A stretch of 64,000 nt of DNA, from the NCBI GenBank assembly GCA_010909165.1, contig MU008174.1, positions 558,001-622,000 of the forward strand, given 5' to 3'. This document shows, in pieces, positions 33,790 to 64,000 of the stretch. This stretch comes from Anthoceros angustus (taxonomy: Eukaryota > Plantae > Anthocerotophyta). Position 1 is the first letter of the stretch; every line of letters starts with the position of its first letter. A program made the position numbers and the translations under genes. Under the pieces are notes generated by a model. The model made no database searches, was not told the origin of the DNA, and saw nothing but the letters and a program-made list of their open reading frames with translations.

Positions 33790-36700
33790 GGGAGGAGGTT
33801 CCTAAAGCTGAGGAGTTGGAGGAGGCAAGGATTGAGTCGTCCTTGGTACTAGTAGTTGAAGGGGAGCCCGTTCTAGCGATAGAGAACCCGGAAGAGGTAG
33901 AGGGCAGACCACCACCAGCCATTGATTAATTTGGAAATACCAAATTAATCAATGAATCCTTAGCTCATTGGAAACAAATGTCCAGCGATGCACCTCCTTG
34001 GAAGGATGAATACTTGTGTATTTGATGACGTATAAACAACAAGATCCTCTTTGTCATTTATCATAAATGTTATCAACTTGTTATTTAATTATTATCATAA
34101 AAATATTACTTTAATATAGCATTATCTAATTATAAATTACGTTTAGGGTTCGTCTAAAGAACTGGCCTAAGTGGCCTCTTACATATAATCCATAAATATG
34201 CTACAGAGTTTACAAACATACCCTCGACCAAAACTTTGACAACTGTCTCCAATATCGCCCTTACAAACATACCCTCGACCAAAACTTTGACAACTGTCTC
34301 CAATATCGCCCAGTACCACATCTCCCACCAAACTGGCCAGTCTCGAAACCTTCTAGCCCTAGCTATATAATCTGGAACAAGTAAACACACCCTAAGATGG
34401 AACGACCCACCGGAAAAGCATTTCAACCATGGTCACTGTGGATCGATCCCAATCCGACCCTACTATCTCTCCTCATTCTGGGTGCATTGTTTTGTACACT
34501 AGCTAGACCTCGTCGCTCCCATCTCTCCATAGGTTGCCCAAGCACAGGCCGAGCGCCATGGCCGCTGTGGTCGCATTCCGACCGTCGACTCTACTACCTC
34601 CCCTCATTCTGGGTGCATTGTTCTGTACACTAGCTAGACCTCGTCGCTCCCATCTCCCCATAGGTTGCCCAAACACTGGCCAAGCCCCATGGCCGCTGTG
34701 GCCGCATTCCGATCGTCGACTCTACTACCTCTCCCCATTCTGGATGCATTGTTCTGTATACAAGCTAGACCTCGTCGCTCACATCTCCCCATAGGTCGCC
34801 CAAGCACAAGCCGAGCCCCAATTACCAGAAGCTCATTGAGCTGAGCTTCTTCCTGCACGATGACGTGGATGTGGCCCACTCGAGCTCCTTTTTCGCGCAG
34901 ATTAGTCCCATGACGAAAATCCGTGCTTAGTGGACTTAAATAAAATTCTTCTTCTTCTTCTTCTTTTTCGTGCTGCAGCCCGCAATGGGCTTCCCGTAAA
35001 GTCTCATGTGTGTGCAAATGGCTTAGGCCAAATGGACACACATTTATAAGAACGTGATTATTAAGCATCCTGCACTTAGATCGGTACTTAGATGGGGTGC
35101 CTAAAGAAAATGGATGCCCTTGGTGCTAGTAGCTTAGGTATACTTGGATCAGTACTTAGATGGGGTGCCTAAAGGAAATGAATGCCCTCGGTGCTAAGTA
35201 GCTTAGACATACCATAGCCTCGGTGCTAAGTAGCTTAGACATACCATAGTACAAGTTGTTAAGTACTAAGTCCCGTGATGGAAATCTGTCCTTAGTGGAC
35301 TTAAATAAAATTCTTCTTCTATAACTATAAGTCTAACCCTTAAATCTTGCCGTGCCCGATCTAAAATCTAAACAGGCCAGTCTTCTTTAGGATATAGTAA
35401 TTCCCTAGACTAGACTGAGCTGCATAATCAGCGAACCCTTTTGTTCCCAACGGAAAAACTATGCGCCAGTCCGTCCATGTCTGTCCACCAGCTTTGACCG
35501 GGCTGCTTCCATGCCCCTATTCGTTTCCTCCTCGCCTGCATCTCCTGTGCCTGTTCCCACATCTGGGCACCGGTGTATATGTTCGACATCAACACATATG
35601 CTGCAGCATCTTCCTGGTCTAGCTTCACGGCTTCGTCAAAAGCATGGCATCCCAACTCCACATGGCTCCACTTTCGACAGGCAGCCAGCAGAGTGTGCCA
35701 AACTGCAGCATCATGCATTCCAGGCACAGTCCTTCCAAAGCTAGTGCCTCGTCCAGTCGACCTGCACGACCCAGGAGATCCACCATACACGTGTAATGGT
35801 CCAGTGTGGGAGTTATGCCATGGTACCTGCTCATAGACTCAAAGTACTGTCGCCCTTGCGTGACTAGACCTGCATGACTGCATACTGTTAGCACATGAAG
35901 AAATGTGATGCCGTCTGGCTGTATACAATCCTCTCTCATTCTCCGAAGCAGGCCAAAGACCGCCTCACTATCTCCTTGACGAGTGTGGCCTGCTATCAGT
36001 GCATTCCAGGCCACAGCGTCTCTCTGAGGCAATGCTTCAAAGACCTTGTGTGCGTCAACCATGCTACCACACTTTCCATACATGTCTATTAAACTGCCAG
36101 CTACAAGCACATCAGCTTGGAGCCCTTGCTGCTTAATCTGGACATGAAGCTGCCTTCCCAGATGTAAAGCTGCAAGATTTGCACATGACTGCAGGAGAGA
36201 CAAAATGTCACACAATTGGGTGTAGCTGTGCTTCCTGTTGCATAGCGCTGTAAAGAGCAAGTGCATCTTGCCCCATCCCCTGCTGGGAATATCCTGCAAT
36301 AAGGGCATTCCACGTCACCAGATCTTTCTGAGGAAGTCTGTCAAACACGGCCTGAGCACATTCCAGGCTTCCGCACTTGGCATACATGTTTACCATGCTG
36401 TTGGCTACAGACACATCCCCAGAAGCCCTCGTTCTCTAATCTGTGAATGAAGGTCTTTGCCCTTCTCCAAAGCCGGGGTGCCCACACTTGCACATGCCTG
36501 CAACATGCACACAAATGTCACAGAATCAGGTGTAACCGTGCCTTCTTTCTGCATTTTGTTGTAAAGACGAAGTGCTTCCTGGCCCATGCCCTGCTGGGAA
36601 TAGCCTCCCATAATGGCATTCCAAGTCACCACATCCTTTTTGGCAAGTCCGTCAAAAACTCTCTGAGCGTCCTCCAAGCTGCCACACTTTGCATACATGT

Positions 36701-37805
36701 TCACCAAGCTGTTGGCCACAAACAAATCAGTCTGAAGCTCTCGTTCTCTGATTTGTGCATGAATGTGCTTCCCATTCTCCAAAGCCGAGGCGCCCACACA
36801 CACACACGCCTGTAGGAGGGACACAAACGTCACAGAATCGGGTGCTGCCAGGCCGTCTTCTTGCATAGCCCTGTAAAGATTGAGGGCTTCCTGGCCCATG
36901 CCCTGGTGGGAATATCCTGCTATCATGGAACTCCATGTCACCACATTTTTCTGACCAAGTCCATCAAACACGCCCCGAGCATCTTCTAGGCTCCCACACT
37001 TCGCGTACATGTGCACCAAACTGCTAGCTATGAACTCGCCAGTGTTTACTCCGTCTTCTCTGATTCGTGCATGCAGGTGCTTTCCCATCTCCAAAGACGG
37101 GGTGCCGAAACTTGCACATGCTCGGAGGAGGCTCACATATGTCACAGAATCTGCAACCAAGCCTTCCTCTTCCATAGCACTGTAAAGGCGAAGGGCTTCC
37201 AGTCCCATGCCTTGCTGGGAATACCCTCCTATCATGGCATTCCATGTCACCACATTTTTTTCCCCAAGTCCATCGAACACTCTTTGAGCATCTTCCAAGC
37301 TACCACACTTTGCATACATGTTCACCAAACTATTAGCTACAACCACATCGGCAACATATCCACATTCTGTTATGTGTGCGTGAAGCTGCCGCCCTTTCCC
37401 CATCGCTGGGGCGCCCAGATTTGCACATGCTTGCAGGAGGCACACAAATGTTACAGAATCGGGCACAGCCATGCCTTCTTCTTGCATAGCATTGTAAAGA
37501 TGAAACGCTTCCTGGCCCATGCCCTGCTGGGAACACCCTGCTATCATGGCATTCCATGTCACCACAGTTTTCTTACCAAGTCCGTCAAATACTTGCTTGG
37601 CGTCTTCCAAGCTGCCACACTTGGCGTACATGTCCACCAACGAGCTACAGACAAACAAATCGGGCTCTACTCCAGTGGCCAGCACATCAGCGTGCACCTG
37701 CTTCCCAGCTTGCAAGTCTGCTCCCCTCGCACAGGCCTGCAGGGCTGCCACAAACACATGCCCATCTGGCTTCACACTTGACTTCCCCATCCGATGATAC
37801 AGTTC
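33790..37805. repeat. Segmental duplicate of 59800-63470
   Basis: Same order in both: LTR-element ORF tail fused to SUV3-like tail, dirigent 5' repeats, then a near-identical PPR gene. Confidence 0.9.
34428..35000 (+). pseudogene. Dirigent pseudogene with a triplicated ~131-bp signal-peptide segment
   Basis: Three units starting 34428, 34558 and 34689 (MAAVVAFRPSTLL..LILGALFC), followed by ELSFFLHDDVD, then truncated. Confidence 0.8.
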
Positions 37806-38425
37806 TATGGCTTCCTGGCTGCACCATGGTGAACATGTGCAGAAATGATGGAAGACCACATGAAGGAATCTGGTTCGGGAACCATGGTGAACACATCCAT
37901 CGCTTCTTGTAACCTGCCATGGGCAACATACATTCGCATAACGTGGTTGCACAAGAACGTATCCGATTCATACCCCGTTTTCACCGTGCAGGCATGTACA
38001 CAGCGAGCCAGAACAAGAGCCTTCTTGACTGCACATTTCTTCAAGACAGAATAAAACAGAGATGTAGAAATCCAACAGTCTGTCTGCACCAGAATTCCCA
38101 AAGCCTCGACAGCCTCCGTGAGCCGCCCCTCACGACATAGCTCGCTCACGGTTTCAGCCGTAACAGCCCTTTCGTGTCCTGCAAGCCTACCAAGGTCACC
38201 AGCCTCCAATGCGCTCCAGTTTGATGCAGGGATAGCACAACCCATCTGCATATCCAGAGCAGCCATCGCAGCATCCACCCAAGTTGGCTTGTTCACCCGG
38301 ATGTCAGGCGACCGGGACGCAAAACTGCTGCACCTGGTGGCTCCGTTGGTGGCTAACGGTTGGTTCCTAGAAGTCAGGTGAGCGCTAGCTCTTCCTAGAA
38401 TGCCTATTAACCTCAAGACACGCAT
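35428..38425 (-). CDS. PLS-class PPR protein with E domains and a truncated PG-box (WW-type); four frameshifts (pseudogene or sequencing errors)
   Basis: Repeated MYAKCGSLEDA..VFD, VVTWNAMIAGYSQQG and DSVTFVCLLQAC motifs; HYTCMVDLLGRAG; C-terminal KQPGQSWWTDMDGLAHSF; R/S/A/L-rich N-terminus resembling a transit peptide. Breaks near 37815, 36418, 36230 and 35735. Confidence 0.9.
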
Positions 38426-38575
38426 GGCTTGCAGGAGGACACCTGAAACTGGGCATGCATCATGCAGCAATGATCAGATCACCAGTCCATCTTCGTGAGC
38501 CTTTAGTACGTCTGTCAATTGCCTGCAACGTGTCTGGGCCAGCAAACCTTATCGTTATGCTTCCATATCCCTCCT

Positions 38576-41020
38576 TCATGGTGGAGAGCACCTGTTTCTT
38601 TCAACCGTGCTGGATGCTTCCCCTGCCAGGAAACTATGCACCAGACCATCCATATCTGTCCACCAGCTCTGGCCTGGCTGCTTCCATGCCCTAATTCTTA
38701 GTCTCCTCACCTGCATCTCCTGAGCCTGCTCCCACATCTGGGCACCAATGTATACGTTTGACATCAACGCATATGCTGCAGCATCTTTACTGTCAAGCTT
38801 CACTGCTTCATCGAAAGCATTACAAGCAACCTCCACATTGCTCCACTTTCTACAAGCACCCAATAGAGTGTGCCAAACTGCAGCATTTGACAGTTCAGAC
38901 ATTGTTCTTACGAGAGCTAGTGCCTCGTCCAATCGGCCTGCACGACCCAGGAGATCCACCATGCATGTGTAGTGGTCTACTGTGGCAGTGATGCCATAGT
39001 GTCTGCTCATAGCCTCGAAGTACTCTTTCCCCTTGTTCACTAGACCCGCATGACTGCATACTGTCAGTACAGAAATGAACGTGATACCATCTGGGTGTAT
39101 GCCATCCTGCCTCATGTGCTCGACCAAGCCAAAGACCATTGCACTGTCTCCTTGGCGAGTGTATCCTGCAATCAGTGCATTCCATGTGACAATATCTCTT
39201 TCAGGCAATGCCTCGAACACCTGATATGCATCGACCATGCTCCCGGACTTCCCGTACATGTTTATCAGACTGCCGGCTACAAGCAAATCAGCTTGAAGCC
39301 TTTGTTCTTGAATCTGTGCATGCAGGTGCTTTCCAACCTGCAGAGCTGCCACATCTGCACATGCTTGCAAGAGGCACACAAATGTCACAGAAGTAGGTAC
39401 AGCAGAACCGTCTTCGACCATTGCAGCATAAACATTAAGGGCTTCCTGACCCATGCCCTGCTGACAATACCCAGCGATCATGGCATTCCATGTCACCACA
39501 TCTTTCTGACCAAGTCCATCAAATACCCTCTGCGCATCTTCCAAGCTGCCACACTTTGCATATGTGTTTACCAAGCTGCTGGCTAGAAATGCATCGCCTT
39601 CAAGCCCTCGTTCTTTGATTTGTGCATGTAGCTGCCTCCCCTTCTCCAAAGCCATGGTGCCTGAATTTACATATGCCTGCAGGAGGCACACAAATGTTAC
39701 GGAATCAGGGGAATCCATGCTGTCAAAAGCCCCTTGGGCATCTTCCAAGCTGCCACACTTTGCATACATGTATACCAAAGTGTTGGCTACAAGCACATCA
39801 GCTTGATGTCCTCGTTCTCTGACTTGTGCATGAAGGTTCTTTCCCTTCTCCAAAGCCAGGGAGCCCACACTTGCACATGCCTGCAGGAGGCACACGAATG
39901 TCACAGAATCAAGTGCAACAAATCCTTCTGTTTCCATAGCACTGTAGAGATGAAGGACTTTCTGTCCCATCCCCTGGTGGGCATACGCTGCTATCATAGC
40001 ACTCCACGTCACCACATCTTTGTGATCAACTCCGTCAAACACTCTTTCAGCGTCTTCCAGGCTGCCACACTTCGCATACATGTTTATCAAACTGTTGGCT
40101 AAAATCACATCTGCTTCATGTCCGCGTTCTCTAAGTTGTCCATGAAGCTGCCTCCCTTTCTGCAAAGCCGAGGTGCCCACACTTGCACAAGCCTGCAGGA
40201 GGGACACAAACGTTACAGAATCGGGTGAGGCCACGCCTTCTTCTTCCATAGCACTGTAAAGTCTAAGGGCTTCTTCGCCCATGCCCTGCTGGGAAAACCC
40301 AGCTATCATGGCATTCCATGTAACCACATCTTTGTGACCAAGTCCGTCAAATACTCTCTGAGCGTCTTCCAAGCTGCCACACTTTGCATACATGTCCACC
40401 AAGGAACTACACACAAACAAATCAAGCTCAGCGCCACTGGCTATCACATCACTGTGCACCTGCTGCCCAGATTCCAAGTCTGCTCCCCTTGCACAAGCCT
40501 GAAGGGCTGCCACAAATACGTGCCCATCTGGCTGCACGCTTGACCTCCGCATTTGATGATACAGCTCTATGGCCTGCTTGTCTTTTCCTTGTTTGACATG
40601 GGCAGAAATTATGGAAGACCACATGAAGACATCTGGTTTGGGGACCACGGTGAAAACATCTATGGCTTCTTGTAACTTGCCATGAGAAGCATACATTCTC
40701 AGAATGTGGTTGCACAAGAACGTGTCCGATTCGTACCCCTTTCGCACCGTGAGAGCATGGATACGGCGACCCAGGATAAGATCCTTCTGGGCAACACAGC
40801 TCTTGAGGACAGTATAAAGGAGAGATTTAGATATACGTGTGTGTGTCTGCTCTAGAACTCCCAAAGCCTCCACAGCCTCCGTCAGATGGCCGTTTTCACA
40901 AAGCTTGCTCACGTTTACGCCGGTTTCATATCCTGCAGGCCTGCGAGGCTCACACTTATCCAGCACGGTCCAGTTGGATGTACCCATCTGCATATCCAGA
41001 GAAGGAAGCTGTGCATCCAC
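38576..41020 (-). CDS. Intact PLS-class PPR protein (E domains plus truncated WW-type PG-box), probable organellar RNA-editing factor
   Basis: 814-aa open frame of P-L-S triplets, E1/E2, ending KQPGQSWWTDMDGLVHSF; no HxE..CxxC DYW core. TAG acceptor at 41021 suggests an upstream exon. Confidence 0.96.
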   Translation of the reverse strand: MDAQLPSLDMQMGTSNWTVLDKCEPRRPAGYETGVNVSKLCENGHLTEAVEALGVLEQTHTRISKSLLYTVLKSCVAQKDLILGRRIHALTVRKGYESDTFLCNHILRMYASHGKLQEAIDVFTVVPKPDVFMWSSIISAHVKQGKDKQAIELYHQMRRSSVQPDGHVFVAALQACARGADLESGQQVHSDVIASGAELDLFVCSSLVDMYAKCGSLEDAQRVFDGLGHKDVVTWNAMIAGFSQQGMGEEALRLYSAMEEEGVASPDSVTFVSLLQACASVGTSALQKGRQLHGQLRERGHEADVILANSLINMYAKCGSLEDAERVFDGVDHKDVVTWSAMIAAYAHQGMGQKVLHLYSAMETEGFVALDSVTFVCLLQACASVGSLALEKGKNLHAQVRERGHQADVLVANTLVYMYAKCGSLEDAQGAFDSMDSPDSVTFVCLLQAYVNSGTMALEKGRQLHAQIKERGLEGDAFLASSLVNTYAKCGSLEDAQRVFDGLGQKDVVTWNAMIAGYCQQGMGQEALNVYAAMVEDGSAVPTSVTFVCLLQACADVAALQVGKHLHAQIQEQRLQADLLVAGSLINMYGKSGSMVDAYQVFEALPERDIVTWNALIAGYTRQGDSAMVFGLVEHMRQDGIHPDGITFISVLTVCSHAGLVNKGKEYFEAMSRHYGITATVDHYTCMVDLLGRAGRLDEALALVRTMSELSNAAVWHTLLGACRKWSNVEVACNAFDEAVKLDSKDAAAYALMSNVYIGAQMWEQAQEMQVRRLRIRAWKQPGQSWWTDMDGLVHSFLAGEASSTVERNRCSPP

Positions 41021-42911: not shown

Positions 42912-43550
42912 ATGCCCGAAACGACCCACCAGAGTAGCACCTCATCCATGGCCGCTGTGGCCGCACTCCGAGCCTCGGCTCTACCATCTCTCCTCATTCT
43001 GGCCGCATTCTGGGCCCCGTCGCTCGCATCTCCCCACAGATCGCCCAGGCCGTACACGCGCCCGAGCCCCAAGCACGAGAAGTTCACCGAGCTCAGCTTT
43101 TTCCTGCACGACGACGTCGATGCGGCCAACGCCAGCGCCTTCTTCGTGCTGCAGCCCATAACGGGCTTCCCGAAGGATTTCACGGCACGGGCGCTGTTCG
43201 GGGCCGTAGTGGTGATGGACGACCCGCTCACGAAAGGCCCGGACCCGGCCTCCACGCTCATCGGCCGGGCCAAGGGCTTCTACGTCTGGGACAGCATCAA
43301 CGGCCAGCCCGCCCTGGAGTTCGTCTTCACCGCCGTGTTGAACCACAAGAGCGGCTTCCAGGAAGGCACCACCGTCTCCTACCGCGGCTTCGACTACATC
43401 CCGGACGTCGTGCGGGAGCTCTCCATCGTCGGAGGCACAAAGGATTTCAGGCTCGCCCGAGGCTGGGCGCAGTTCTCCGTCGTCGAGACCGTCGGCTTCA
43501 ACGCTGTCCTCAACTTCACCTCATTCATCTTCCACGGCGCTTATGAGTAA
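42912..43550 (+). CDS. Dirigent family protein (secreted), single exon
   Basis: Hydrophobic signal region; FFLHD, FGAVVVMDDPLT..LIGRAKGFY and RELSIVGGTKDFRLARGWA dirigent motifs. Start may be the ATG at 42948. Confidence 0.96.
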   Translation: MPETTHQSSTSSMAAVAALRASALPSLLILAAFWAPSLASPHRSPRPYTRPSPKHEKFTELSFFLHDDVDAANASAFFVLQPITGFPKDFTARALFGAVVVMDDPLTKGPDPASTLIGRAKGFYVWDSINGQPALEFVFTAVLNHKSGFQEGTTVSYRGFDYIPDVVRELSIVGGTKDFRLARGWAQFSVVETVGFNAVLNFTSFIFHGAYE

Positions 43551-47960: not shown

Positions 47961-49511
47961 TATCTTCTCTAGCTTTGTGTTACCTTCTCTTAGAGTGGCT
48001 TACGAACAACCTCAAGATTCAAAGCGCAAAAACAAGCTTGATAAAAAGTTACAATAGAATAAAGTAAGGTGGTCTCTTATATATATTTAATGAGGAATCA
48101 TGTGGCACGATATCCAAGGAATATTTAATGTCTCAAGAGTCGTTATCCAAAGATCTTTAGGAGTCTATTGCATCAAAGAAAAAATTACGTGATTTAGTTA
48201 TTGTAGGTGTGCAACGGAAAAGTTTGGTCATCTAAGTTTTTGGCAAAACGCGAAAAGAATTGATGCCAATATCGGAAGGTTCTAGTAGGAAAGCTTTGTG
48301 CGGATGGTTGATGGGATAATGACTACCATTTGGGTAGGCAGTAGAAGGCTTGTAAGCCTCCAAACCGGTAGGGTCGTGTCTTGGGATGCAATAGGTAGGT
48401 GGTAGGTACGTCGTTCCGTAGGATGTCCGTAGGTGGACCAGGACTTAACTGATTTGGGACACCTGTAGGGGGTCCGGGACTTGCTAGTTTGTGGGCAGAA
48501 GGGTTAGTAGGGTAGGATATGTTAGAAGTCCACTTAATATGCATATATAGGGGAATCAGAGGTTTGAAACACCGACGATCGAGGACCAAAATCTCCTTGG
48601 ACTTTGGCTAGGAATATTCAAGCAGGTAGGAAGTCCTTGGCCTTTGGGGTTTCGGTAGGAAGATCCTTGGTTTTGGTAGGAGTAGGATGAGGATGAAGAC
48701 ATGCATGTCAAAGACCAAGGAGAGAAACTTCCTTGGAATTTGGGGGTTTCATTTCCTCGAATATTGTGCAGTAGGGCTATATATGCATGTTAGTTAGACT
48801 ATATATAGAAAATGGAGCCAGTTGATCGAAACCATCGAGGAGGACACGTGGCGCACATTGGGATGAGGCGCAACTGAAGGACCAGGTCGGTTTTGCATGT
48901 ACCTGCGCCCTTTGGGATGTGACCTGACAAACCTGGCGGCTGCGAGCACGAGAGAAAGAAGGCAAATCTCGAGCGCGTTGCCAGAGAGCGCAAGCTGAAG
49001 CTGCGTGATTGAGCGGACGTGCTCGCAAGGTAGAGATTGAGGAAACATAGGTCTTGCAAATGCCAAGGCGGGGCAGCGCTTGGAGCGAGGTAGCGGTGAA
49101 GGCACGAAACGGCGCAAAAGCTCCTGGCAACCCTAAGCTGTGCATGTTGGAGTGGAGCGAGCAGGGGGCATCGTGGAGCTTGGAGTGGAGTTGGAGTTAT
49201 GCTGGTGTGCGCACTCGTGAGCGGGGGCGTCTATTAGGGAGATGATGTGATAGGGATTCCTTTCTCGCCGGCTTCAAAGTGGGAGTGTTGGAGGGGAGAC
49301 TGAAGGGAATTTTTGAGGAGTAACAGTGTCTAGGGAAAAACGGCTTAGACCACAAAGCCCTTTAAGGCTATGGGGGATACACAATGCGCACCCTCCCCAA
49401 AGGTGACGTTAAGCCCATCTTTAGTTTTGAATGTTTGGGTGCTGGGAGGAATCCCATCAAAATAGACAAAAACCATTAAACTTAACGATCGGAACAAGAA
49501 GATTGTTTATG

Positions 49512-49535
49512 AGTGCGCCGGTATACCGGCGCACT
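49512..49535. promoter_or_regulatory. Perfect 24-bp palindrome AGTGCGCCGGTATACCGGCGCACT (duplicate at 50686-50709)
   Basis: Sequence equals its own reverse complement; function is unknown. Confidence 0.7.
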
Positions 49536-50791
49536 GACTTTCGACTCACTCCAAGTTCGGCATGTCTCCACCTCCGATCATGCTGTTTTAAACAAAACGA
49601 AAGGTATCACACGTACTTCATATTTCTAAACTATCGCCAATCGCCTTTGTACGCCTTGTCGATCGAGTCCCGCATAAATGTCACATTCTCGAGTTCGCAT
49701 CATCGCTGCCTTCACCAAAATAGTCTCCTTCGATATTCATTAGTGAAAACGCAGGATCTTCGGTTGTTTGTTGTGGCAGTCCTGCTCATCCCATAATCAC
49801 CGCCAAGAATTCGCTTGAGGGGCCGCTGTCTCTTTGAGTTCTTTCTGCCTGCTGACCCTTCTTACCCATTAAGTCAGAACCTGCAACTTCCTTTCTGTGG
49901 TACCGTTAGCGAAAATTTCTTTTGCTCAGAATTTTGATATCCCTCTTGTAAACTTCTCTGTTGTGGTCTCCTCATCAGCATCTGGAAGCTGCTCCAGGCT
50001 GTTCACCCTCTGTGGAATGTACATGGCACACCTGGGATCATTTTCGACTGCCACAACATTCCTCCCACTTCTGATGGCAGCCACCAAAAAGCTGCCTGAC
50101 CCGGCGCAAGCATCCACCACCCAGTCCTTCTCATTGCTGAACATGTTAACAAGCATGGTCATCAATCCCTGTGGCTTTTGATATGGACAAACCACCGCTT
50201 GTCGTTAGCCAGAAAATGAGTTTCTTCACGGCCCATGCCGGATAACTCGAAGGACATCGGTTGTATTCGCTTGCAAATGCCAAGGCGGGCGCGCTTGGAG
50301 CGAGGTAGCGGTGAAGGCACGAACGGCGCAAAGCTCCCGCAACCCTAAGTCGTGCATGTTGGAGTGGAGCGGGGGCATCGTGGAGCTTGGAGTGGAGTTG
50401 GAGTTATGCTGTGCGACTCGTGAGCGGGGCGCCTATTAGGGAGATGATGATAGGGATTCCTTTCGCCGGCTTCAAAGTGGGAGTGTTGAGGAGATCAAGG
50501 GAATTTTGAGGAGTAAAGGTCTAGGGAAAACGGCTTAGACCACAAAGCCCTTTAAGGCTATGGGGATACACAATGCGCACCCTCCCAAAGCCCATCTTTA
50601 GTTTTGAATGTTTGGGTCGGAGGAATCCCATCAAAATAGACAAAAACCATTAAACTTAACGATCGGAACAAGAAGATTGTTTATGAGTGCGCCGGTATAC
50701 CGGCGCACTGACTTTCGACTCACTCCAAGTTCGGCATGTCTCCACCTCCGATCATGCTGTTTTAAACAAAACGAAAGGTATCACACGTACT

Positions 50792-53782
50792 TCATATTTC
50801 TAAACTATCAGTTGCACTGTCTTTGTACGCTTCCTTGTCGACTGAGTCCCGCACAAATGTCACATTCTCGAGTTCTGCATCATCGTCGTCTTCACCAAAA
50901 TAGTCTCCTTCGATATTCATTAGTGAAAACGCAGGATCTTCGGTTGTTTGTTGTGGCAGAGTCCCGTTCTCATCCCATACTGTCACTGCCAGCAATTCAG
51001 TTGAGGGGCCGCTGTCTCTTTGAGTTCTTTCTGCCTGCTGACCCTTCTTACCCATTAAGCTGTAAACCTGCAACTTCCTTTCTGTGGTACCGTTAGCGAA
51101 AATTTCTTTTGCTCAGAATTTTGATATCCCTCTTGTAAACTTCTCTGTTGTGGTCTCCTCATCAGCATCTGGAAGCTGCTCCAGGCTGTTCACCCTCTGT
51201 GGAATGTACATGGCACACCTGGGATCATTTTCGACTGCCACAACATTCCTCCCACTGATGGCGCCACCAAAAGCCGCTCGACCAAGCATCCACCACCAGT
51301 CCTTCTCATTGCGAACATGTTAACAAGCATGGTCATCAATCCCTGTGGCTTTTGATATGGACAAACCACTGCTTTGTCGTTAGCCAGAAAATGAGTTTCT
51401 TCACGACAGTTCCATGCCGGATAACTCTGGGAAGGACATCGGTTGTATTCGCCTTTGCAAATAAAGAGGCCCTGGGAACATTCGATATACTCCGTACTCC
51501 GCTGCCGACAGTGATGAACTCCACAGTCTCCACTATCCCTGTGTTCGGGGGAATATTTGTTTTTTCCCATACCAACGTTTGAATCGCTCCTTTCCTACAC
51601 AGTCGCTTCAGAGCCTCCCTCGCCAAGGACAGGTCATCCACGCCATGCATAAGAATGACTCTAAACACATCAGAAGTTGCCTCTAAACCTCCAGAGCTTT
51701 GCTGCTCGCCTTCGTCTTCTGTGGATAACGGCAGAACTGGGACCTCATCCTCTTCAACCTCGGCTTACATTCTCCTGACCATTATGCCTTCCTCTTCCTC
51801 GATTGTGAGAGGCTGCGCAAACTGGACTTGAGCAGAAGATTGCCTTGCCAAGACTGCAAGGCGCTCGACTTCCGCACGGTTTGATTGGACTCCTTGTGAA
51901 ACAAACCGTAATGCTCGATAGAATTGCTCCCCGTCATTCACCACAACATAAGTTCTTACAAACCCTAAAAATTCAAACATGCATATCGTATGGCAACGCC
52001 GCACGCACGCCTTCCAATCGAACGGAAAACCGAAGAGGGTCTCTAATGTACGCCGTTCACATCGCCGAATCGCAATTGTTTGCGTCTAGCACAAACATGA
52101 TATGACTATCTACATCATCAGTGATATGAAACTGAGGATGTAAAGTTACCAAAAAGTGAAGGAACATTTCGTCATCCACTCCATCCACCGTCACCCACAT
52201 GATCCACCCTACACGCTTTCTCATCCTCGGATTTCCTTCATAGCCATTTACCCATAACGCCATAAGTGGATTCCAAGGAGTTGACTCGTCTTCCGGCTCC
52301 ATGTCATCGTGAGACCACTCCTTCTCTATTAAGAAGCGCTTTTTCAAACTTTCTGCAATCGCCTCACCTTCCGCAATTCTTGGAAGTTGTAAGGATTAGG
52401 AGAACCCAATCCAGCCCACTTCCCCAGTACTCCCTCCTGCTGGATTCCATTGTGCATCCCCAATCATGTCCACATTACCGGCTTGCTTTGATGTGGAAGC
52501 ACGCACTTCCATGAGACGATCTTTCCTCGCGAAATCGCCTATGCCGGAATTGGAGGCGAGATGCCGTGAGCACTGTGGATTTATTCTGCCAGACGCCGCT
52601 CTTGCCTTTGCCTCGAGCTTCATTCCTTGTTTTCTTCAACCGTTTGGGCAGCTCCAGAGCCTCCCTCGCCAAGGACAGGTCATCCACGCCATGCATAAGA
52701 ATGACTCTAAACACATCAGAAGTTGCCTCTAAACCTCCAGAGCTTTGCTGCTCGCCTTCGTCTTCTGTGGATAACGGCAGAACTGGGACCTCATCCTCTT
52801 CAACCTCGGCTTACATTCTCCTGACCATTATGCCTTCCTCTTCCTCGATTGTGAGAGGCTGCGCAAACTGGACTTGAGCAGAAGATTGCCTTGCCAAGAC
52901 TGCAAGGCGCTCGACTTCCGCACGGTTTGATTGGACTCCTTGTGAAACAAACCGTAACAGCGTTCGATAGAATTGCTCCCCTCCCTGTCATTCACCACAA
53001 CATAAGTTCTTACAAACCCTAAAAATTCGAAACATGCATATCAGGTATGGCAACGTCTGCACGTACGTCTTCCAATCGAACGGAAAACCGAAGAGGGTCT
53101 CTAATGTACGCCGGTTCACATCGCCGAACTGCAGCTTGTTTGCGTCTAGCACAAACATGATATGACTATCTACATCATCAGTGATATGAAACTGAGGATG
53201 TAAAGTTACCAAAAAGTGGAGGAACATTTCGTCATCCACTCCATCCACCGTCACCCACATGATCCACCCTACACGGGCTTTCTCATCCTCGGGATTTCCT
53301 TCATAGCCATTTACCCATAACGCCATAAGTGGATTCCAAGGAGTTGACTCGTCTTCCGGCTCCATGTCTACTGTGACAGACCACTCCTTCTCTATTAAGA
53401 AGCGCTTTTTCAAACTTTCCTGCAATCGCCTCACCTTCTGCAATTCTTGGAAGTTGTAAGGATTAGGAGCGAACCCAATCCAGTTCCACTTCCCCCAGTA
53501 CTCCCTCCTGCTGGATTCCATTGTGCATCCCCAATCATGTCCACATTACGCTGGCTTGCTTTGATGTGGAAGCACGCACACTTCCATGAGACGAATCTTT
53601 CCTCTGCGAAATCGCCTATGCTGGAATTGAGGGGCATGCCGTGAGCACCGTGGATTTATTCGCGACGCCGCTCTTGCCTTTGCCTGAGCTTCATTCCTTG
53701 TTTTCTTCAACCGTTTGGGCAGCTCCAAAGCCTCAACCACCTTTGTATCTACAGCTTTCTTGCTCCTGCGTCCGCTCGCCAT
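50792..53782 (-). CDS. Beta-class N4-cytosine/N6-adenine DNA methyltransferase-like gene, broken by frameshifts and duplications (duplicate 3' part at 49620-50270)
   Basis: TLVWEK..ETVEFI, then CPYQKPQGLMTMLVNMFSNEKDWVVDACAGSGSFLVAAIRSGRNVVAVEND, match the HPxxKP..S..GD.VLDPFxGSG..AA..GR..GxE signature. Catalytic (D/S)PPY not located. Confidence 0.8.
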
Positions 53783-55442
53783 GGAAACTAACGGCCTTGT
53801 TTAGGAAGGGAAAAGAAAGGAAGGTGGCATGTGCTGGTAAGAGTGTCTTGTCTCTTCACCAAAATGAATTGGAGGGAACACTCATTTCAAACACCCAAAT
53901 TCGTCGGGATATTAGGGAACGGAAACATGTCCTTGTAAAACCAAAATTAGTAATGAAACAACAAACCTTTGAAGGCGGATCAGATTTGAGTGGATCCTGT
54001 TGGCACCAAGAGAATGACAACACGAATCACGACATATCTTCCAACTGGAAACACTCATTAAGAAATGGGGTTTCCCATACAATTATATCCTCGCGGTTTC
54101 TTTGAATCTGCAGTCATCGCGAACATGTTGCGTGCTTGGAAAGAGTTCGTACAAAGCATCCCCATTCCTCCCCCTGTGAACCATTTGGAGGAAGGAAGAC
54201 AAATGGAGAAGTCTGCAGAACAAGTTGGCGATATATGTGCTGAAAGTAGCGGAGGGAAACGGGTGGAAACGCTGAGCCATTCTGTTGTGATGTGTTGATG
54301 ATGTCTTCATTTCTTTGACACTCCGGACGTCCTTGTTTACAGAGGCGAGATGGTGACCAAAGGGCTCCTAACGAAGTGACCGAAGATGAAAGTGATGAAG
54401 GTGAGGCCACTGCATCCCCAATCATGTCCACATTACGTACCGGCTTGCTTTGATGTGGAAGCACGCACACTTCCATGAGACGATCTTTCCTCGCGAAATC
54501 GCTATGCCGGAATTGAGGGGCGATGGCGCGTGAGCACTGTGGATTTATTCGTGACGCCGCTCTTGCCTTTGCCTCGAGCTTCATTCCTTGTTTTCAACCG
54601 CTTGGGCAGCTCCAGCCTCAACCACCTCTGCATCTACAGCTTTCTTGCTCTCGCCGCCATGGAAACTAACGGCCTTGTCTAGGAAGGAAAAGAAAGGAAG
54701 GTGGCATCTGGTAAGAGTGTCTTGTCCCTTCACCAAAATGAATTGAGGGAACACTCATTTCAAACACCAATTCGTCGGGATATTAGGAACGAAACATATC
54801 CATGTGCAACCAAAATTAGTAATGAAACAACAAACCTTTGAAGGCGGATCACATTTGAATGGATCTGTTGGCACCAAGAGAATGACAACACGAATCACGA
54901 CATATCTTCCAACTGGAAACACTCATTAAGAAATGGGGTTTCCGTTGTACAATTATATCCTCGCGGTTTCTTTGAATCTGCAGTCATCGCGAACATGTTG
55001 CGTGCTTGGAAAGAGTTCGTACAAAGCATCCCCATTCCTCCCCCGTGAACCATTTGGAGGAAGGAAGACAAATGGAGAAGTCTGCAAGTTGGCGATATAT
55101 GTGCTGAAAGTAGCGGAGGGAAACGGTGGAAACGCCGAGCCATTATGTTGTGATTTGTTGATGATGTCTTCATTTCTTTGACACTGGACGCCCTTGTTTA
55201 CAGGCGAGATGGTGACCAAAGGGCTCCTAACGAAGTGACCAAGATGAAAGTGATGAAGGTGAGGCCACCGCATCCAACAACGCAAATACGACCTCACATC
55301 GCTTAAAGTCGTGTAATATGTTTCATGTCATTGGATCAGAGCACAGAACTGTGAGCGTCTGCGGATCTCCAGCAATCTCCAAATCCTTAATGATGTCTCC
55401 AAGAGCGCCTTTTGATGCCATTCACAGTGTGCACCAAGAGTA

Positions 55443-58304
55443 TTGCCACCATACAGTCCGGAAGTTCAAAAGACCACGCCGCTGGGAATGCGAAGACGGG
55501 AAGAAGAAGAGCCTCGTATCATATTCAGTGCTTCTCTCGGCGTAAACGTGAATGCAGATGTCAGGCCCCCCATATCTCGACGACATCTGTTTAAACCTCC
55601 GGAGGCACATACACTTCAGTGTGATGATGATCTTTCCAGCAGTGACTCAGGGGATTTCCAAGTCGAGCCACCTCGCAGACGGACTTTTAATATGAAGCCA
55701 AGATCAGAAACATTTATTGAAACGCGGACCCAGCGACAGGGAAAAAAGAAATCCAAGGTGCCGGAACTCAAATGCTTGGAAAGTCGTATCTCGTGATTTG
55801 AAAGTTGTATTGTGCTAAATCTTATACCGCTAGGTAAACCCACCTTCCGAGACACGAGATATCGCTTTCCTTCGGATGAGTAGGCGGAGCAGAAACGTTT
55901 TGCAATCACTTTTCTTTTCATCAAGCGTAAACATAGCGGAGTGAAGGTGGAGACTTTAGTTGGAAGAGCGAGTTCATCTTTGTCAAGCATTTAGGAGGGT
56001 GTTTTGTATAGGTTCAAATCGGCACGGCGGCCAAGGAGAGAGCCGCAGATAATATACCATGGTCTGCCCTCCTCCGGTATGAGAGGCAACCGACGTACCA
56101 TGCTTCCACTGCAGTGGCGTGGATGAACCTGTTGTTCATGTTAATCGCAGAGCGGGTGCCAAATGTTGAATCGTATCACCTTCCGGACTCTTATACCAAA
56201 GGAGAAATATTTCAAGAATACAGCGGGCTGGCCAGTACAATATTTCACACTCCTACTTTTGCCAGTTGTGGCAGAATCACTTCCCGAAAGTAAGGATCCC
56301 AAAAAATAATCGTTTTGCAGCTTGTGCTACATGCGACTACCTTAAACGGAAGATCAGGAGCGAGAAAGAACGCGTGAAACAAGGTACGATGTTGTTTGAA
56401 AATTGAGTGCGCCAGATACCGCGATCCGAAAGGTCATAGCCAAGTGCGCCAGATACCGCACTGAGTCGGCAAGTGCGCCAGATACCAACAAGACTTGGCC
56501 ATTCTCATTTGCACTTGCTACAGATGCCATGTTCCCAGATTGTTGCCATATTAAACAGCATGTTGTTCCTTGGTTCATTGAGCGTGTAAGAATATGAAGC
56601 CGATTTGCGAAACCACAGAGAGCGTTTAAAAGCAGAGAGGGAAAAGTGCATGAAGCATCGGGTCAAGTGTTATGCAAACCCCGCACGGTATCTCGGACTC
56701 TCTATAGACGGAATGGACCAACAGAAGACACAGCTTCCACATTTCATGCATCTGCCAAAGAATATGGCAGACACTCCGCTTCTTGACGTCCATGTTGTTG
56801 GCTGTCTTGTATACAACTATACTATGTCAGCAAAATTGTTCATCGAGTTTGGAAATATCAGGAACGACGCAAACCTGACAATCGCCATCATACAACATGT
56901 TATATTGAACTACAAGGGTTTACTTCCGAAGGTGTTATATTTGCAACTGGACAACACGACACGTGAAAATAAAACGCCTCGCTCGCCTACCTTAACATGT
57001 TGGTGTCATAGTCTTTGAGAAGATCAAGGTAGGCTTCCTCCTTGTTGGCACACCCATGATCAGAGACCAAATGTTCTCCGATTGACCGCTAAGGCATAAG
57101 GAGGCTTTTACCTTGCCCAAACTCACCTATGTGTTGGAAAGTGCTTATACGCCAAACCCACAGATTGTATTGGTGCCTGAAGTCCCTGATTTTAGAAGGT
57201 ATGTTTGGCCCATCCCTAATGGCAGGGCTGGCTACCAACGGGTAGTCAGTGCATCGATTGCACAACATTTCTTTTCAAAGATCCCAAAATAACTCGAGAG
57301 GAGAGGGAGGAACGCGGTTTCATTACGGTGATGCGAGGTAAACAATATTCAACTGATAATTACTGGTCCACCAATGAAGGCCTCGAGTTCTTGAAGCATG
57401 TGCCAGAATGACCAATTTTTGCTGCCCCTCTGATGTCTTTGGAAGTAAGGAGCAAAAAAGCACATGCTGAAGGAAGAGATGCTGAAAGGTCATTGTCAGT
57501 TATCCGGGCCAAATTGGAGGAGAAATTAAAAGACATTTTGGGCGACGGCGAAGATGTGTGGTGGAAATCGTTTTGGGAAGAACAAGAGGGCATTGTGGAA
57601 AATATAAATTCAGGGTCCGTACAGGAATTGAAGAATCCTTGGCGATGGTATAATCGAGAAGAAGCAGAGATCCTGCAGCATCCTGTTTCTGCTCCGGATG
57701 TTGAAGTCCTTCCTCATCCATTGCTGCGAAAAGTGCATAGACGAGACATGTATGTAGGAACCTATCGGAACAATGGTTTCCGACGAAGAGAGCAAGAGAG
57801 GTTAAATGGTGATATTTCGGAGATTGCGGCGGAAATATGATAGCGCCTTGCGAAATGATGCGCCAATCGTCCTTTTCTCGGATTGCAAAGGTCCTTCACA
57901 TAGATTTCGAAAAGCGAATCACCTTTCATGAAAGTTCACCGTGGGTGACACAGAACACAGACGCTTTTGAAGGAAGGTACATGGAAGAGATGATATTGCC
58001 AGACGAAGTGCTTTTAGGGCACGGTACAAGGCGTTGCAGGCAAGGCACTAGAAGGTCAAAGAAGAATGTGCAGATGCTGATCATTGCTGATACATTTGTT
58101 TTGGCCTATGGGTTTGAACTAACTCGAACTAAACAGCTGAAGGCCCAAACACGTTCAATCATCAGGCGAAATCTTATGACGCTCCGCTCCGTGCAAGAAG
58201 ATGTGCCAATGGAGGCGAACCAAGACCGTGGAAGGGCGAACAACGACGACGATCAGGTGGCTATTGAAGACGACGATCATGTGGCTATTGAAGACGACCC
58301 TTAG
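55443..58304 (+). CDS. DDE transposase, Sola-like, spliced, frameshifted; 5' exons may extend to ~53990
   Basis: YHLPDSYTK..LWQNHFPKVRIP..ACATC; in-frame GT-AG intron 56384-56590; LSIDGMDQ, LYLQLDNTTRENK, and FLLVG(H)THD..DQMFS at ~57032-57080. Confidence 0.85.
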
Positions 58305-58351
58305 CTTCATGTACATCCTTTTCTTGACCGGTTTACATGAGTGTGACGTGG

Positions 58352-58373
58352 GGGCCCCGGTATACCGGCGCCC
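58352..58373. promoter_or_regulatory. 22-bp palindrome GGGCCCCGGTATACCGGCGCCC with one mismatch
   Basis: Same CCGGTATACCGG core as 49512; lies just after the transposase stop. Confidence 0.65.
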
Positions 58374-60342
58374 TCCCCTCTCATTCATGTATACCGATGA
58401 AGCCAAATGCAACCATTCAAACGCACGTATATGCACTTGGACGACACACATGAGTCGGAACATGATGGAAGGACAAGAGGGAAGTACGAGAAATTTGTGC
58501 GGCTAAATATCCCACAAACATGTCCAAGTCGCCTCTCTGTCTGGAGTACATGTCACAGCTCATACACCACCCCCGATGCGGGTAAATGGATTCCAGCCTT
58601 TGACAGTGTAAACAGGGTACAAGTTTATCATGACAATAAAATGTAGTTTTCTTGACTTCCATCGTTCCATCGGATCCAGAGTTGGCAGATTCGTGGATCC
58701 CAGCATGTAAGGCCATGATTTTGTTGTATCTCAGTTTTGGCCTGTTTTTACAGGAGAAATTGGGTTGTTTTGCATAAAAGCCCAAAATAGCGGAATAAGC
58801 CGTTTTTCCCTGGACACTGTTGAGTTTAGAGGTTGGAGCGAGTTGGCATGTTGACTGAGGTTCTAGAGTGGAGCTTGAGGGGCTAAAGGCCACCCCTTGG
58901 TGGTTGTGCGGGAGCATTGGCGTTGTGGGGCACAAGGAGATCTCCTTGTTTGCTGGCCCACCCTCGTCTCTATCTTTTGCTCACCCGCTTCCTTAGTCTG
59001 ATAGCTTGCTTTTCTTCCTCTCCAACTACTATCCTTATTTCTGCTCAACTTGTGTAGATGGTGAAGATTGTAAGGACAGGAGGTGGAGGTACTCCCACCC
59101 ATGGCCAATGGGCGGGCAGGAGGCCAATGCCTCGTACACCTCCCAGTAGAGGCAAGGGGAAGAAGAACCCCATTCCCGAGCTTGATTGCAAGAATATCTA
59201 AATCTCACCTCTAGACTTGGATGCTTTTGAGAGATATGCTGAGGAGTTGAAGATGGAATGGCTGTACCTAATGCCAGGATGGGATTATTCAAGTCCTGCA
59301 TTGGTACAGGAGTGTGCCCGACGGCTAAGAGCCACGAGAGGGGATTCAAAAATCCCAAAAGATACAACCATTCGGAGCCATCTAGGGATGTGGAAAGTGT
59401 GACACTTCCAACAAACCTATTTGATGTCAGAATTGCGCACAAGGGCAGAAACATATCATCCGCCGAGTTCTCAAAAAGTCAAATTCCGTAGGCAGCCATG
59501 GAAATGTTCTTACGGCCTAAGGAGGAAGTTTGGTCCCATCGAAATGGCCGGAGGGTATCCATGTTTAAGGAGTGCAAATGGAACCTATTTGCCAAGATAT
59601 GGCTAGGACTCATTTGCGTAGTCAGGAAGACCTATTTGGTGAATTCTCATCTTATGATGATATATGAGATGTCTGAGGGAAAGTTGGTGGATTGGGCAAG
59701 CGTCCTATATGAGCAGGCCGTTGCTCACAGGAACCATCTGACATCGGACAAAGCAAAGATCAACTTCATATAGATCAGCCTGGTTCATCTGTATCAAAGG
59801 GAGGAGGTTCTCAAAGCTGAGGAGTTGGATCGAGACCTCCTTGGTACGAGGGAGCCCGCTCTTGCGACAGAGGACCCGAAAGAGATAGAGAGCAGACCAA
59901 CTTCACCACCACGAGCCATTGATTAATTTGGAAATCCCAAATTAATCAATGAATCCTTAGCTATTGGAAACAAATATCTAGCGATCCACCTCCTTGGGAA
60001 GATGAATACTCGGGTATTTGATGACGAATAAACAATAAGATCCTCTTTGTCATTTATCATAAATGTTATCAACTTGTCATTTGATTGTTATTGTCAAAAT
60101 ATTATTTTAATATAATATTATCTAATTATCAATTACGTTTTAAAAAAATTGTCTAAAGAACTGGCCTAAGTGGCCTCTTACATACAATCCATGAATAGCT
60201 ACAGAGTTTACGAACATACCCTCCACCAAAACTCTGACAAATGTCTCCAACACCACCCAGTACCACATCTCCCACCAACCCGGCCAGTCTCAAAACCTTC
60301 TAGCCCTAGCTATATAATCAGGAATAGGTTAACACAACCCAG

Positions 60343-61076: not shown

Positions 61077-64000
61077 CTAGACTGAGCTACATAATCCGCG
61101 AACCCTTTTGTTCGCAACGGAAAAACTATGCGCCAGTCCGTCCATGTCTGTCCACCAGCTTTGACCGGGCTGCTTCCATGCCCCGATTCGTTTCCTCCTC
61201 GCCTGCATCTCCTGTGCCTGTTCCCACATCTGGGCACCGGTGTATATGTTCGACATCAACACATATGCTGCAGCATCTTCGTGGTCTAGCTTCACGGCTT
61301 CGTCAAAAGCATGGCATCCCAACTCCACATGGCTCCACTTTCGACAGGCAGCCAGCAGAGTGTGCCAAACTGCAGCATCATGCATTCCAGGCACAGTCCT
61401 TCCAAAGCTAGTGCCTCGTCCAGTCGACCTGCACGACCCAGGAGATCCACCATACACGTGTAATGGTCCAGTGTGGGAGTTATGCCATGGTACCTGCTCA
61501 TAGACTCAAAGTACTGTCGCCCTTGCGTGACTAGACCTGCATGACTGCATACTGTTAGCACATGAAGAAATGTGATGCCGTCTGGCTGTATACAATCCTC
61601 TCTCATTCTCCGAAGCAGGCCAAAGACCGCCTCACTATCTCCTTGACGAGTGTGGCCTGCTATCAGTGCATTCAGGCCACAGCGTCTCTCTGAGGCAATG
61701 CTTCAAAGACCTTGTGTGCGTCAACCATGCTACCACACTTTCCATACATGTCTATTAAACTGCCAGCTACAAGCACATCAGCTTGGAGCCCTTGCTGCTT
61801 AATCTGGACATGAAGCTGCCTTCCCAGATGTAAAGCTGCAAGATTTGCACATGACTGCAGGAGAGACAAAATGTCACACAATTGGGTGTAGCCGTGCTTC
61901 CTGTTGCATAGCGCTGTAAAGACGAAGTGCTTCCTGGCCCATGCCCTGCTGGGAATATCCTGCAATAAGGGCATTCCACGTCACCAGATCTTTCTGAGGA
62001 AGTCTGTCAAACACGGCCTGAGCACATTCCAGGCTTCCGCACTTGGCATACATGTTTACCATGCTGTTGGCTACAGACACATCCCCAGAAGCCCTCGTTC
62101 TCTAATCTGTGAATGAAGGTCTTTGCCCTTCTCCAAAGCCGGGTGCCCACACTTGCACATGCCTGCAACATGCACACAAATGTCACAGAATCAGGTGTAA
62201 CCGTGCCTTCTTTCTGCATTTTGTTGTAAAGACGAAGTGCTTCCTGGCCCATGCCCTGCTGGGAATAGCCTCTCATAATGGCATTCCAAGTCACCACATC
62301 CTTTTTGGCAAGTCCGTCAAAAACTCTCTGAGCGTCTTCCAAGCTGCCACACTTTGCATACATGTTCACCAAGCTGTTGGCCACAAACAAATCAGTCTGA
62401 AGCTCTCGTTCTCTGATTTGTGCATGAATCTGCTTCCCATTCTCCAAAGCCGAGGCGCCCACACACACACACGCCTGTAGGAGGGACACAAACGTCACAG
62501 AATCGGGTGCTGCCAAGCCGTCTTCTTGCATAGCCCTGTAAAGCTTCAGGGCTTCCTGGCCCATGCCCTGGTGGGAATATGCTGCTATCATGGAACTCCA
62601 TGTCACCACATTTTTCTGACCAAGTCCATCAAACACGCCCCGAGCATCTTCTAGGCTCCCACACTTCGCGTACATGTGCACCAAACTGCTAGCTATGAAC
62701 TCGCCAGTGTTTACTGCGTCTTCTCTGATTCGTGCATGCAGGTGCTTTCCCATCTCCAAAGACGGGGTGCCGAAACTTGCACATGCTCGGAGGAGGCTCA
62801 CATACGTCACAGAATCTGCAACCAAGCCTTCCTCTTCCATAGCACTGTAAAGGCGAAGGGCTTCCAGTCCCATGCCTTGCTGGGAATACCCTCCTATCAT
62901 GGCATTCCATGTCACCACATTTTTTTCCCCAAGTCCATCGAACACTCTTTGAGCATCTTCCAAGCTACCACACTTTGCATACATGTTCACCAAACTATTA
63001 GCTACGACCACATCGGCAACATATCCACATTCTGTTATGTGTGCGTGAAGCTGCCGCCCTTTCCCCATCGCTGGGGCGCCCAGATTTGCACTGCTTGCAG
63101 GAGGCACACAAATGTTACAGAATCGGGCACAGCCATGCCTTCTTCTTGCATAGCATTGTAAAGATGAAACGCTTCCTGGGCCATGCCCTGCTGGGAACAC
63201 CCTGCTATCATGGCATTCCATGTCACCACAGTTTTCTTACCAAGTCCGTCAAATACTTGCTTGGCGTCTTCCAAGCTGCCACACTTGGCGTACATGTCCA
63301 CCAACGAGCTACAGACAAACAAATCGGGCTCTACTCCAGTGGCCAGCACATCAGCGTGCACCTGCTTCCCAGCTTGCAAGTCTGCTCCCCTCGCACAGGC
63401 CTGCAGGGCTGCCACAAACACATGCCCATCTGGCTTCACACTTGACTTCCCCATCCGATGATACAGTTCTGCCAAGCTGTCTTCTTGCATAGCCCTGTAA
63501 AGCTTCAGGGCTTCCTGGCCCATGCCCTGGTGGGAATATGCTGCTATCATGGAACTCCATGTCACCACATTTTTCTGACCAAGTCCATCAAACACGCCCT
63601 GAGCATCTTCTAGGCTCCCACACTTCGCGTACATGTGCACCAAACTGCTAGCTATGAACTCGCCAGTGTTTACTGCGTCTTCTCTGATTCGTGCATGCAG
63701 GTGCTTCCCATCTCCAAAGACGGGTGCTGAAACTTGCACATGCTCGGAGGAGGCTCACATACGTCACAGAATCTGCAACCAAGCCTTCCTCTTCCATAGC
63801 ACTGTAAAGGAAGGGCTTCCAGTCCCATGCCTTGCTGGGAATACCTCCTATCATGGCATTCCATGTCACCACATTTTTCCCCAAGTCCATCGAACACTCT
63901 TTGAGCATCTTCCAAGCTACCACACTTTGCATACATGTTCACCAAACTATTAGCTACGACCACATCGGCAACATATCCACATTCTGTTATGTGTGCGTGA
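61077..64000 (-). CDS. PLS-PPR (WW-type) duplicate of 35428-38425, frameshifted, incomplete at the window edge
   Basis: Near-identical to 35428-37805; 63469-64000 re-copies 62510 onward. Confidence 0.88.

Follow-up and report, generated by a model that had tools for sequence, protein, structure and literature searches.

The 64-kb stretch of Anthoceros angustus DNA analyzed here (contig MU008174.1, positions 558,001 to 622,000; hereafter the window, with coordinates counted from its first letter) carries a large mobile element at positions 49322-58821. This element is a bona fide DNA transposon insertion, bounded by terminal inverted repeats (TIRs) and a target-site duplication (TSD). With a probability of roughly 0.75, the locus as a whole is best explained by a cut-and-paste DNA transposon with two genes that inserted once into a land-plant genome, long ago, and is now dead. 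One gene encodes a transposase, and the other, divergently oriented, encodes an accessory protein with a methyltransferase module at its C-terminal end. Both genes are pseudogenes, each with several frameshifts and stops. This copy can itself do nothing. Two-gene plant transposons of this kind appear not to have been described before, and a literature search turned up no report of an amino-methyltransferase carried by a DNA transposon of plants.

The ends of the element are sharply defined. The TIRs, at 49322-49347 on the plus strand and 58796-58821 on the minus strand, are 26 nt long and complementary at 25 of the 26 positions, with one mismatch. In an end-to-end alignment, the similarity between the left and right ends of the element breaks off exactly at 26 bp. 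The TIR 26-mer occurs only twice in the window, where 0.00 occurrences are expected by chance. Identical GAGT tetranucleotides, read straight from the letters, flank the element at 49318-49321 and 58822-58825 as the TSD of this one insertion (n = 1), and no alternative register of TIR and TSD fits the repeat and the duplication together. A CACTA identity was rejected on account of termini that read AACAGTG inward and of the 4-bp length of the TSD. Removal of one unit from each of three internal tandem duplications leaves 9500 - 1217 - 1046 - 887 = 6350 bp, and the original element was thus about 6.35 kb long before the duplications. A first-pass annotation, made from the letters of the window, had proposed 26-bp TIRs with one mismatch, a 4-bp GAGT TSD, two head-to-head genes, internal tandem duplicates and a length of about 6.4 kb without these. 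All of this holds up, with a DUF7869 match on the plus strand, an N6_N4_Mtase match on the minus strand, and three duplications whose coordinates were set by self-comparison. The annotation had also proposed a genome-wide TIR search for further copies; this was run on the 64-kb window only, where the 26-mer has no third site.

The transposase pseudogene (56012-58304, plus strand) matches the Pfam family DUF7869 (PF25273) in two collinear pieces. The frame at 56590-57015, searched as the plus-strand piece 56605-57018, aligns with profile positions 1-74 (E = 8e-16, 58.6 bits, cut-off 26), and the frame at 57086-57289 aligns with profile positions 118-159 at 57089-57214 (E = 0.013). The unmatched stretch of the profile maps to 56976-57088, a region with several changes of reading frame. 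Catalytic-type motifs are found at 56707-56721 (DGMDQ) and 56947-56973 (LDNTTRENK), followed at 57029-57079 by VGFLLVG, HTHDQ and DQMFS, which are spread over two shifted frames. The third acidic residue appears to be an aspartate, the D of HTHD at 57049 in the frameshifted stretch. The resulting putative D-D-D triad (the D of DGMDQ, LDNTTRENK and HTHD) was set by eye. From the letters alone, a canonical GT-AG intron of 207 nt at 56384-56590 is predicted to join ...ERVKQ to (E)YEADL... in frame. The spliced DDE transposase that had been claimed for the plus strand is thereby recovered as a DUF7869-type DD(D) protein with at least one inferred canonical GT-AG intron. The gene has suffered five or more frameshifts and an in-frame stop, and its acidic C-terminal tail includes a 24-bp tandem repeat at 58245-58298. 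Among Atlas clusters, the closest hold DUF7869 fragments of eukaryotes, namely arthropods and molluscs.

The accessory gene ends in the S-adenosylmethionine (AdoMet)-binding module of a beta-class, bacterial/phage-type DNA amino-methyltransferase. Its pieces were searched separately. The C-terminal coding piece carrying the module (49926-50204, minus strand) was recognized with Pfam, PDB, PHROG and NCBIfam. Its final 92 codons (49929-50204) are intact in the first unit of duplication 1 and are followed by a stop at 49926-49928. Both AdoMet-binding motifs expected at the C-terminus of such enzymes are present: a motif X region with CPYQKP at 50172-50189 and a motif I of the FxGxG type, DACAGSGS, at 50091-50114. 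The piece, searched as the interval 49926-50195, matches Pfam N6_N4_Mtase (PF01555) with E = 3.4e-10 (40.7 bits, cut-off 26.7, profile positions 163-213 of 221). It also aligns to the AdoMet-binding region of PDB 2zie (TTHA0409; E = 2.8e-5) and of 1eg2 (M.RsrI), and matches several PHROG DNA methyltransferase families (best 5e-14) and Atlas PF01555 clusters. Its match to the NCBIfam CcrM-like model lies below the cut-off. Identity to phage adenine methylases is about 40% over about 65 residues, and at most 42%.

The first-pass annotation had made its methyltransferase call depend on a match to an amino-methyltransferase profile, and the N6_N4_Mtase match above the Pfam threshold supports the call. 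Its wider description, a beta-class pattern throughout the C-terminal half of the protein, stands for the last ~55 residues of the domain; the rest has no profile match. The accessory open reading frame (ORF) ends about 55 residues past motif I, so any catalytic part must be located upstream of the module, as in the permuted order of the beta class. A second, frameshifted copy of the module lies in the second unit of duplication 1 (51116-51370, minus strand), with CPYQKP at 51346-51363, AVENDP at 51221-51238 and motif I destroyed. Two adjacent beta-class methylase ORFs were also seen on a metagenome contig (L002:2010-3909), probably a prokaryotic or phage locus. The second of these ORFs has the exact peptide MFSNEKDWV in common with the module of the element, but a divergent motif I.

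Judged by eye and by spacing, the frame at 51339-52085 (minus strand), upstream of the module, may encode the N-terminal half of the methyltransferase domain, which would hold the catalytic part. Its 249 codons are interrupted by one in-frame stop (51765-51767). Read by eye, it contains TLETLFGFPFDW, an acidic insert, FRVILMHG and LVWEKTN; GFPFDW, at 52014-52031, precedes the acidic insert, and LVWEKTN lies at 51555-51575. The spacing from W.K to CPYQKP is 71 aa, compared with 68 aa in a phage enzyme (L011). The remaining upstream part of the gene (52060-55330, minus strand) is duplicated and frameshifted. Within it lie an open frame of 185 codons (52991-53545) and a basic patch, KRLKKTR. An exhaustive HMMER search with this 185-aa frame returned 0 matches among 1.84 billion representative proteins, and its single-sequence AlphaFold model is unusable, with a predicted local distance difference test (pLDDT) score of 36. 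PDB searches with the upstream pieces gave chance-level matches only, and hhalign of these pieces against a small beta-class alignment gave a probability of 0.1. The N6_N4_Mtase match thus stays at profile positions 163-213 and does not extend to the whole domain. No ParB domain was found in Pfam or PHROG for minus-strand pieces of at least 40 aa, nor in PDB.

Self-comparison identified three abutting tandem duplications within or at the element. Duplication 1 (49053-51462) consists of units 49053-50278 and 50270-51462, which differ by 5.1% substitutions. Duplication 2 (51605-53734; units 51605-52663 and 52651-53734) lies inside the accessory gene, and its units are 95% identical, with a substitution difference of 3.4%. 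Duplication 3 (53524-55275; units 53524-54417 and 54411-55275) overlaps the end of duplication 2, and its units show 92.6% identity and a 4.2% substitution difference. Duplication 1 starts 269 bp outside the element, and each unit consists of 269 bp of host flank and the leftmost ~957 bp of the element. In its second unit the host flank and the GAGT recur, followed at about 50519 by a left TIR in degraded form. Because the host flank and the left junction are copied in it, duplication 1 arose in place after insertion. Its units are 61 substitutions (42 of them transitions) and 28 indel events apart. Microhomology of 6-9 bp is found at all three junctions, that of duplication 1 lying on the 8-bp TTGCAAAT. 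Since duplication, the units have diverged by about 3-5% substitutions, mostly transitions, together with many small indels. The three duplications are serial and partly overlapping within 49053-55275, with units of about 0.9-1.2 kb and a similar divergence, which suggests either one complex episode of template switching or a burst of several.

The element contains palindromes near both ends. A perfect 24-bp palindrome with the core GCGCCGGTATACCGGCGC lies at 49512-49535, 190 bp inside the left end (0.01 expected by chance), and its duplicate in the second unit of duplication 1 has the same core (50686-50709). An 80-bp imperfect palindrome is located ~450 bp inside the right end at 58323-58402 and shares this 18-bp core with 1 mismatch (58354-58371). 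Sequence comparison further identified three direct copies of the palindrome half-site AGTGCGCCAGATACC in the transposase intron (56406-56486, plus strand), and all seven occurrences of the octamer AGTGCGCC in the window fall within the element. The transposase or the accessory protein may well bind at these palindromes and half-sites.

We propose that in intact relatives the accessory protein would be a DNA amino-methyltransferase, or would descend from one and retain the binding of AdoMet and DNA, and that it would act on the element's own DNA. The likeliest targets would be the GCGCCGGTATACCGGCGC palindromes, which are specific to the element and lie close to both of its ends, and the AGTGCGCC half-sites. 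Methylation or binding at these sites could control the time at which the ends become usable by the transposase. Dam methylation regulates IS10 and Tn5 in this way. This mechanism of self-methylation or self-binding, which we favor, is suggested by that analogy and by the cis elements. Alternatively, the accessory protein could interfere with host silencing by 5-methylcytosine (5mC). That the family holds an active self-marking methylase is a tentative proposal, with the odds somewhat against it; a catalytically dead binding protein is given slightly lower odds, and a functionless passenger gene takes up the remainder. A broader proposal would have land plants host an autonomous transposon family with its own bacterial/phage-type amino-methyltransferase, which writes N6-methyladenine (6mA) or N4-methylcytosine (4mC) on the element palindromes and so times transposition or blocks 5mC silencing. 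The same family would have been the vehicle of PF01555 enzymes, such as the Marchantia sperm 4mC methylase, into plant genomes. Taken as one joint claim, this is distinctly unlikely.

The duplications could be assembly artefacts, with noisy long-read overlaps joined end to end and many of the frameshifts being sequencing errors; the true element would then be 6.35 kb and perhaps less broken. The exact abutting of the units and the many 1-2 bp indels between them (68 indel events vs 133 substitutions over all three unit pairs) would fit such an origin. However, 97 of the 133 substitutions (73%) are transitions and 45 of these 97 (46%) fall in a CG or CHG context, which is a mutational signature. 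Just 15 of the 68 small indel events are located in homopolymers, the junction microhomologies are too short for assembler overlap, and nearby pentatricopeptide repeat (PPR) genes have intact ORFs of 404-814 aa. Transition-rich, CG/CHG-biased differences point to decay of methylated plant DNA, not read error, and we therefore take the duplications as real and old. They look like microhomology-mediated events that followed insertion, and an artefactual origin is improbable. Several findings nevertheless weigh against a single old insertion of a two-gene transposon. The ratio of indels to substitutions between units is ~0.5, above that of usual neutral decay, and some local assembly error may be present. 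The upstream pieces of the accessory gene have no match in Pfam, PHROG, NCBIfam, PDB or by hhalign, which leaves only the last ~55 residues of the domain detectable. Canonical motif IV, (D/N/S)PP(Y/F/W), is absent from every minus-strand frame, the best candidate being GFPF at 52014 and 53072, and searches with the short, broken pieces of the element reached neither another copy nor a relative. The superfamily of the transposase can also be questioned. A 4-bp TSD and a D-D-D triad together are reportedly the signature of Sola transposons, as Bao and colleagues are said to have described in 2009. The element has GAGT on both sides of its one insertion and an apparent triad with the third acid in HTHD, and it resembles Sola1-3 in being a TIR-bounded cut-and-paste element. 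To this extent the earlier label of "Sola-like" stands, whereas the target does not fit. Sola1 and Sola2 have a reported preference for AT-rich AWWT targets (PMC3845634, PMC3627910), from which GAGT departs, although a single insertion is a weak test. The element further differs from Sola1-3 in its large second gene with a methyltransferase module. Among plants, a Physcomitrella Sola1 is listed (PMC9033089). The comparison with Sola rests on the TSD and the triad, the sole family matched by the transposase being DUF7869, whose tie to Sola is putative. The transposase might then belong to another or unnamed DDE/DDD group that makes 4-bp duplications. Given the reported Sola signature and termini unlike those of CACTA, we regard a non-Sola origin as unlikely.

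The nature of the accessory protein is likewise open to more than one explanation. It could be catalytically dead throughout the family and act as an accessory factor that binds DNA or AdoMet, for instance one that recognizes the palindromes, rather than as a writer of 6mA or 4mC. Such a role would be consistent with GFPF at the expected place of motif IV in both duplicate units, with the canonical motif in no frame, and with an AdoMet module that matches methyltransferase profiles beside a catalytic half that matches none. The two GFPF copies, however, are not independent, as they stem from a post-insertion duplication, and the codons GGT TTT CCG TTC are three transitions away from GAT CCT CCG TTC (DPPF) in a sequence whose decay is dominated by transitions. 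The non-canonical motif IV may be a trait of the family or mutational decay of this single copy, and we find a family-wide dead enzyme rather unlikely. A one-off capture would instead make the gene a passenger, a methyltransferase fragment of host, bacterial or viral origin without a role in the life cycle of the element. The recognizable domain is only partial, the window holds no second copy to show that the two genes are linked, and DNA transposons are known to take up foreign genes, as giant-virus Mariner elements have done with Fanzor and methylases (PMC3627910). Yet once the duplicates are removed, the accessory gene takes up over half of the element, in a regular layout divergent from the transposase, and long remnant frames persist in it, one of 185 codons and one of 249 codons with one stop. 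The published surveys consulted also do not report PF01555-type enzymes as ordinary land-plant genes (PMC4738411, PMC8885841). Such a one-off capture is unlikely, and we continue with the two-gene transposon as the preferred reading.

Searches for relatives of this transposon returned little. No homologous proteins turned up for the methylase piece (92 aa) or the transposase core (142 aa) in a search whose length window of 0.55-1.75x misses intact relatives of pieces of up to 185 aa. A metagenome scan recovered prokaryote-like methylases only, mostly matched by motif I alone. Viral scans matched the accessory gene to distant phage methylases and the transposase to nothing. An exact look-up of 15 ORFs of the window in the protein collection found 0; because host proteins are absent from this collection, other copies are beyond the reach of a protein search. 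A survey of eukaryotic adenine methylases lists no clade of this kind (PMC4738411), and the bdelloid PF01555 enzyme N4CMT is said to have no eukaryotic homologues (PMC8885841).

Several known systems share features with the element. Like the beta-class PF01555 enzymes (M.RsrI, 1eg2; TTHA0409, 2zie; CcrM; phage methylases), the accessory protein has a motif X / motif I-III AdoMet module at its C-terminus. Unlike them, it is transposon-borne in a eukaryote and has an unrecognizable catalytic half, GFPF as motif IV, a long acidic insert and no restriction partner. MpDN4MT1a/b of Marchantia (bioRxiv 10.1101/2021.02.12.428880) and bdelloid N4CMT (PMC8885841) are 4mC enzymes encoded by eukaryotic hosts and belong to the same Pfam family; they are bacterial-type proteins that work in eukaryotic nuclei, in the case of Marchantia those of a land plant. 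These are encoded by single-copy or tandem host genes, have a TSPPY-type motif and proven activity, whereas the gene described here is transposon-borne and broken. A TSPPY-type N4C motif is absent from the minus-strand frames of the element.

Other cut-and-paste elements encode a protein that acts on DNA or chromatin marks beside their transposase. These include fungal DNA transposons with TET/JBP dioxygenases (PMC12730594; its introduction cites HarbingerS with SET and the anti-silencing VANC of VANDAL, and no amino-methylase) and giant-virus Mariner elements with methyltransferases (PMC3627910). They differ from the present element in enzyme class, transposase family and host, and neither PMC12730594 nor PMC3627910 describes a plant transposon with PF01555. 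Phage ParB-methyltransferase fusions carry a methyltransferase module of the same family, but a ParB domain is undetected here in any frame. ParB was either lost or decayed in this copy or never present in its subfamily.

Few transposons encode chromatin or DNA modifiers of their own, and those that do reveal ways in which mobile DNA evades or exploits the silencing machinery of its host. If the proposed role is true, an amino-methyltransferase of the restriction-modification type would be a new enzyme class among transposon-borne modifiers. It would also offer a concrete route for 4mC and 6mA writers into plant genomes, a question that dates from the discovery of 4mC in bdelloid rotifers and in the sperm of Marchantia. 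The copy at 49322-58821 documents only the insertion and death of such an element, and its value lies in the family.

Several PLS-type PPR genes, of which one has an E motif, together with a Dirigent gene and a Copia reverse transcriptase mark the window as nuclear land-plant DNA. The PLS-type PPR cluster occupies 35625-41020 and 62007-63739 on the minus strand, with intact ORFs of 814 aa (the one with the E motif), 515 aa and 404 aa. Intact PPR frames of 404-814 codons imply that base-level assembly is good outside the element. The observed/expected CpG ratio is 0.41 in the 814-aa PPR gene compared with 0.82 in the transposon. A 14-kb block at 14000-28000 has a G+C content of 56-66%, compared with about 40-50% elsewhere, and a strong C-over-G skew on the plus strand. 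This block contains no tandem repeats and no Rfam match, and its ORFs of 186-231 aa have no Pfam match. Rfam gave no match anywhere in the window. The Dirigent-family gene lies at 42912-43550 (Pfam E = 2e-31), and its best relative among 5.8 billion proteins is 43% identical, which indicates that the host lineage is poorly covered in public protein sets. The Copia-type reverse transcriptase ORF at 6989-7840 (RVT_2, E = 5e-78) is part of a long terminal repeat (LTR) retrotransposon.

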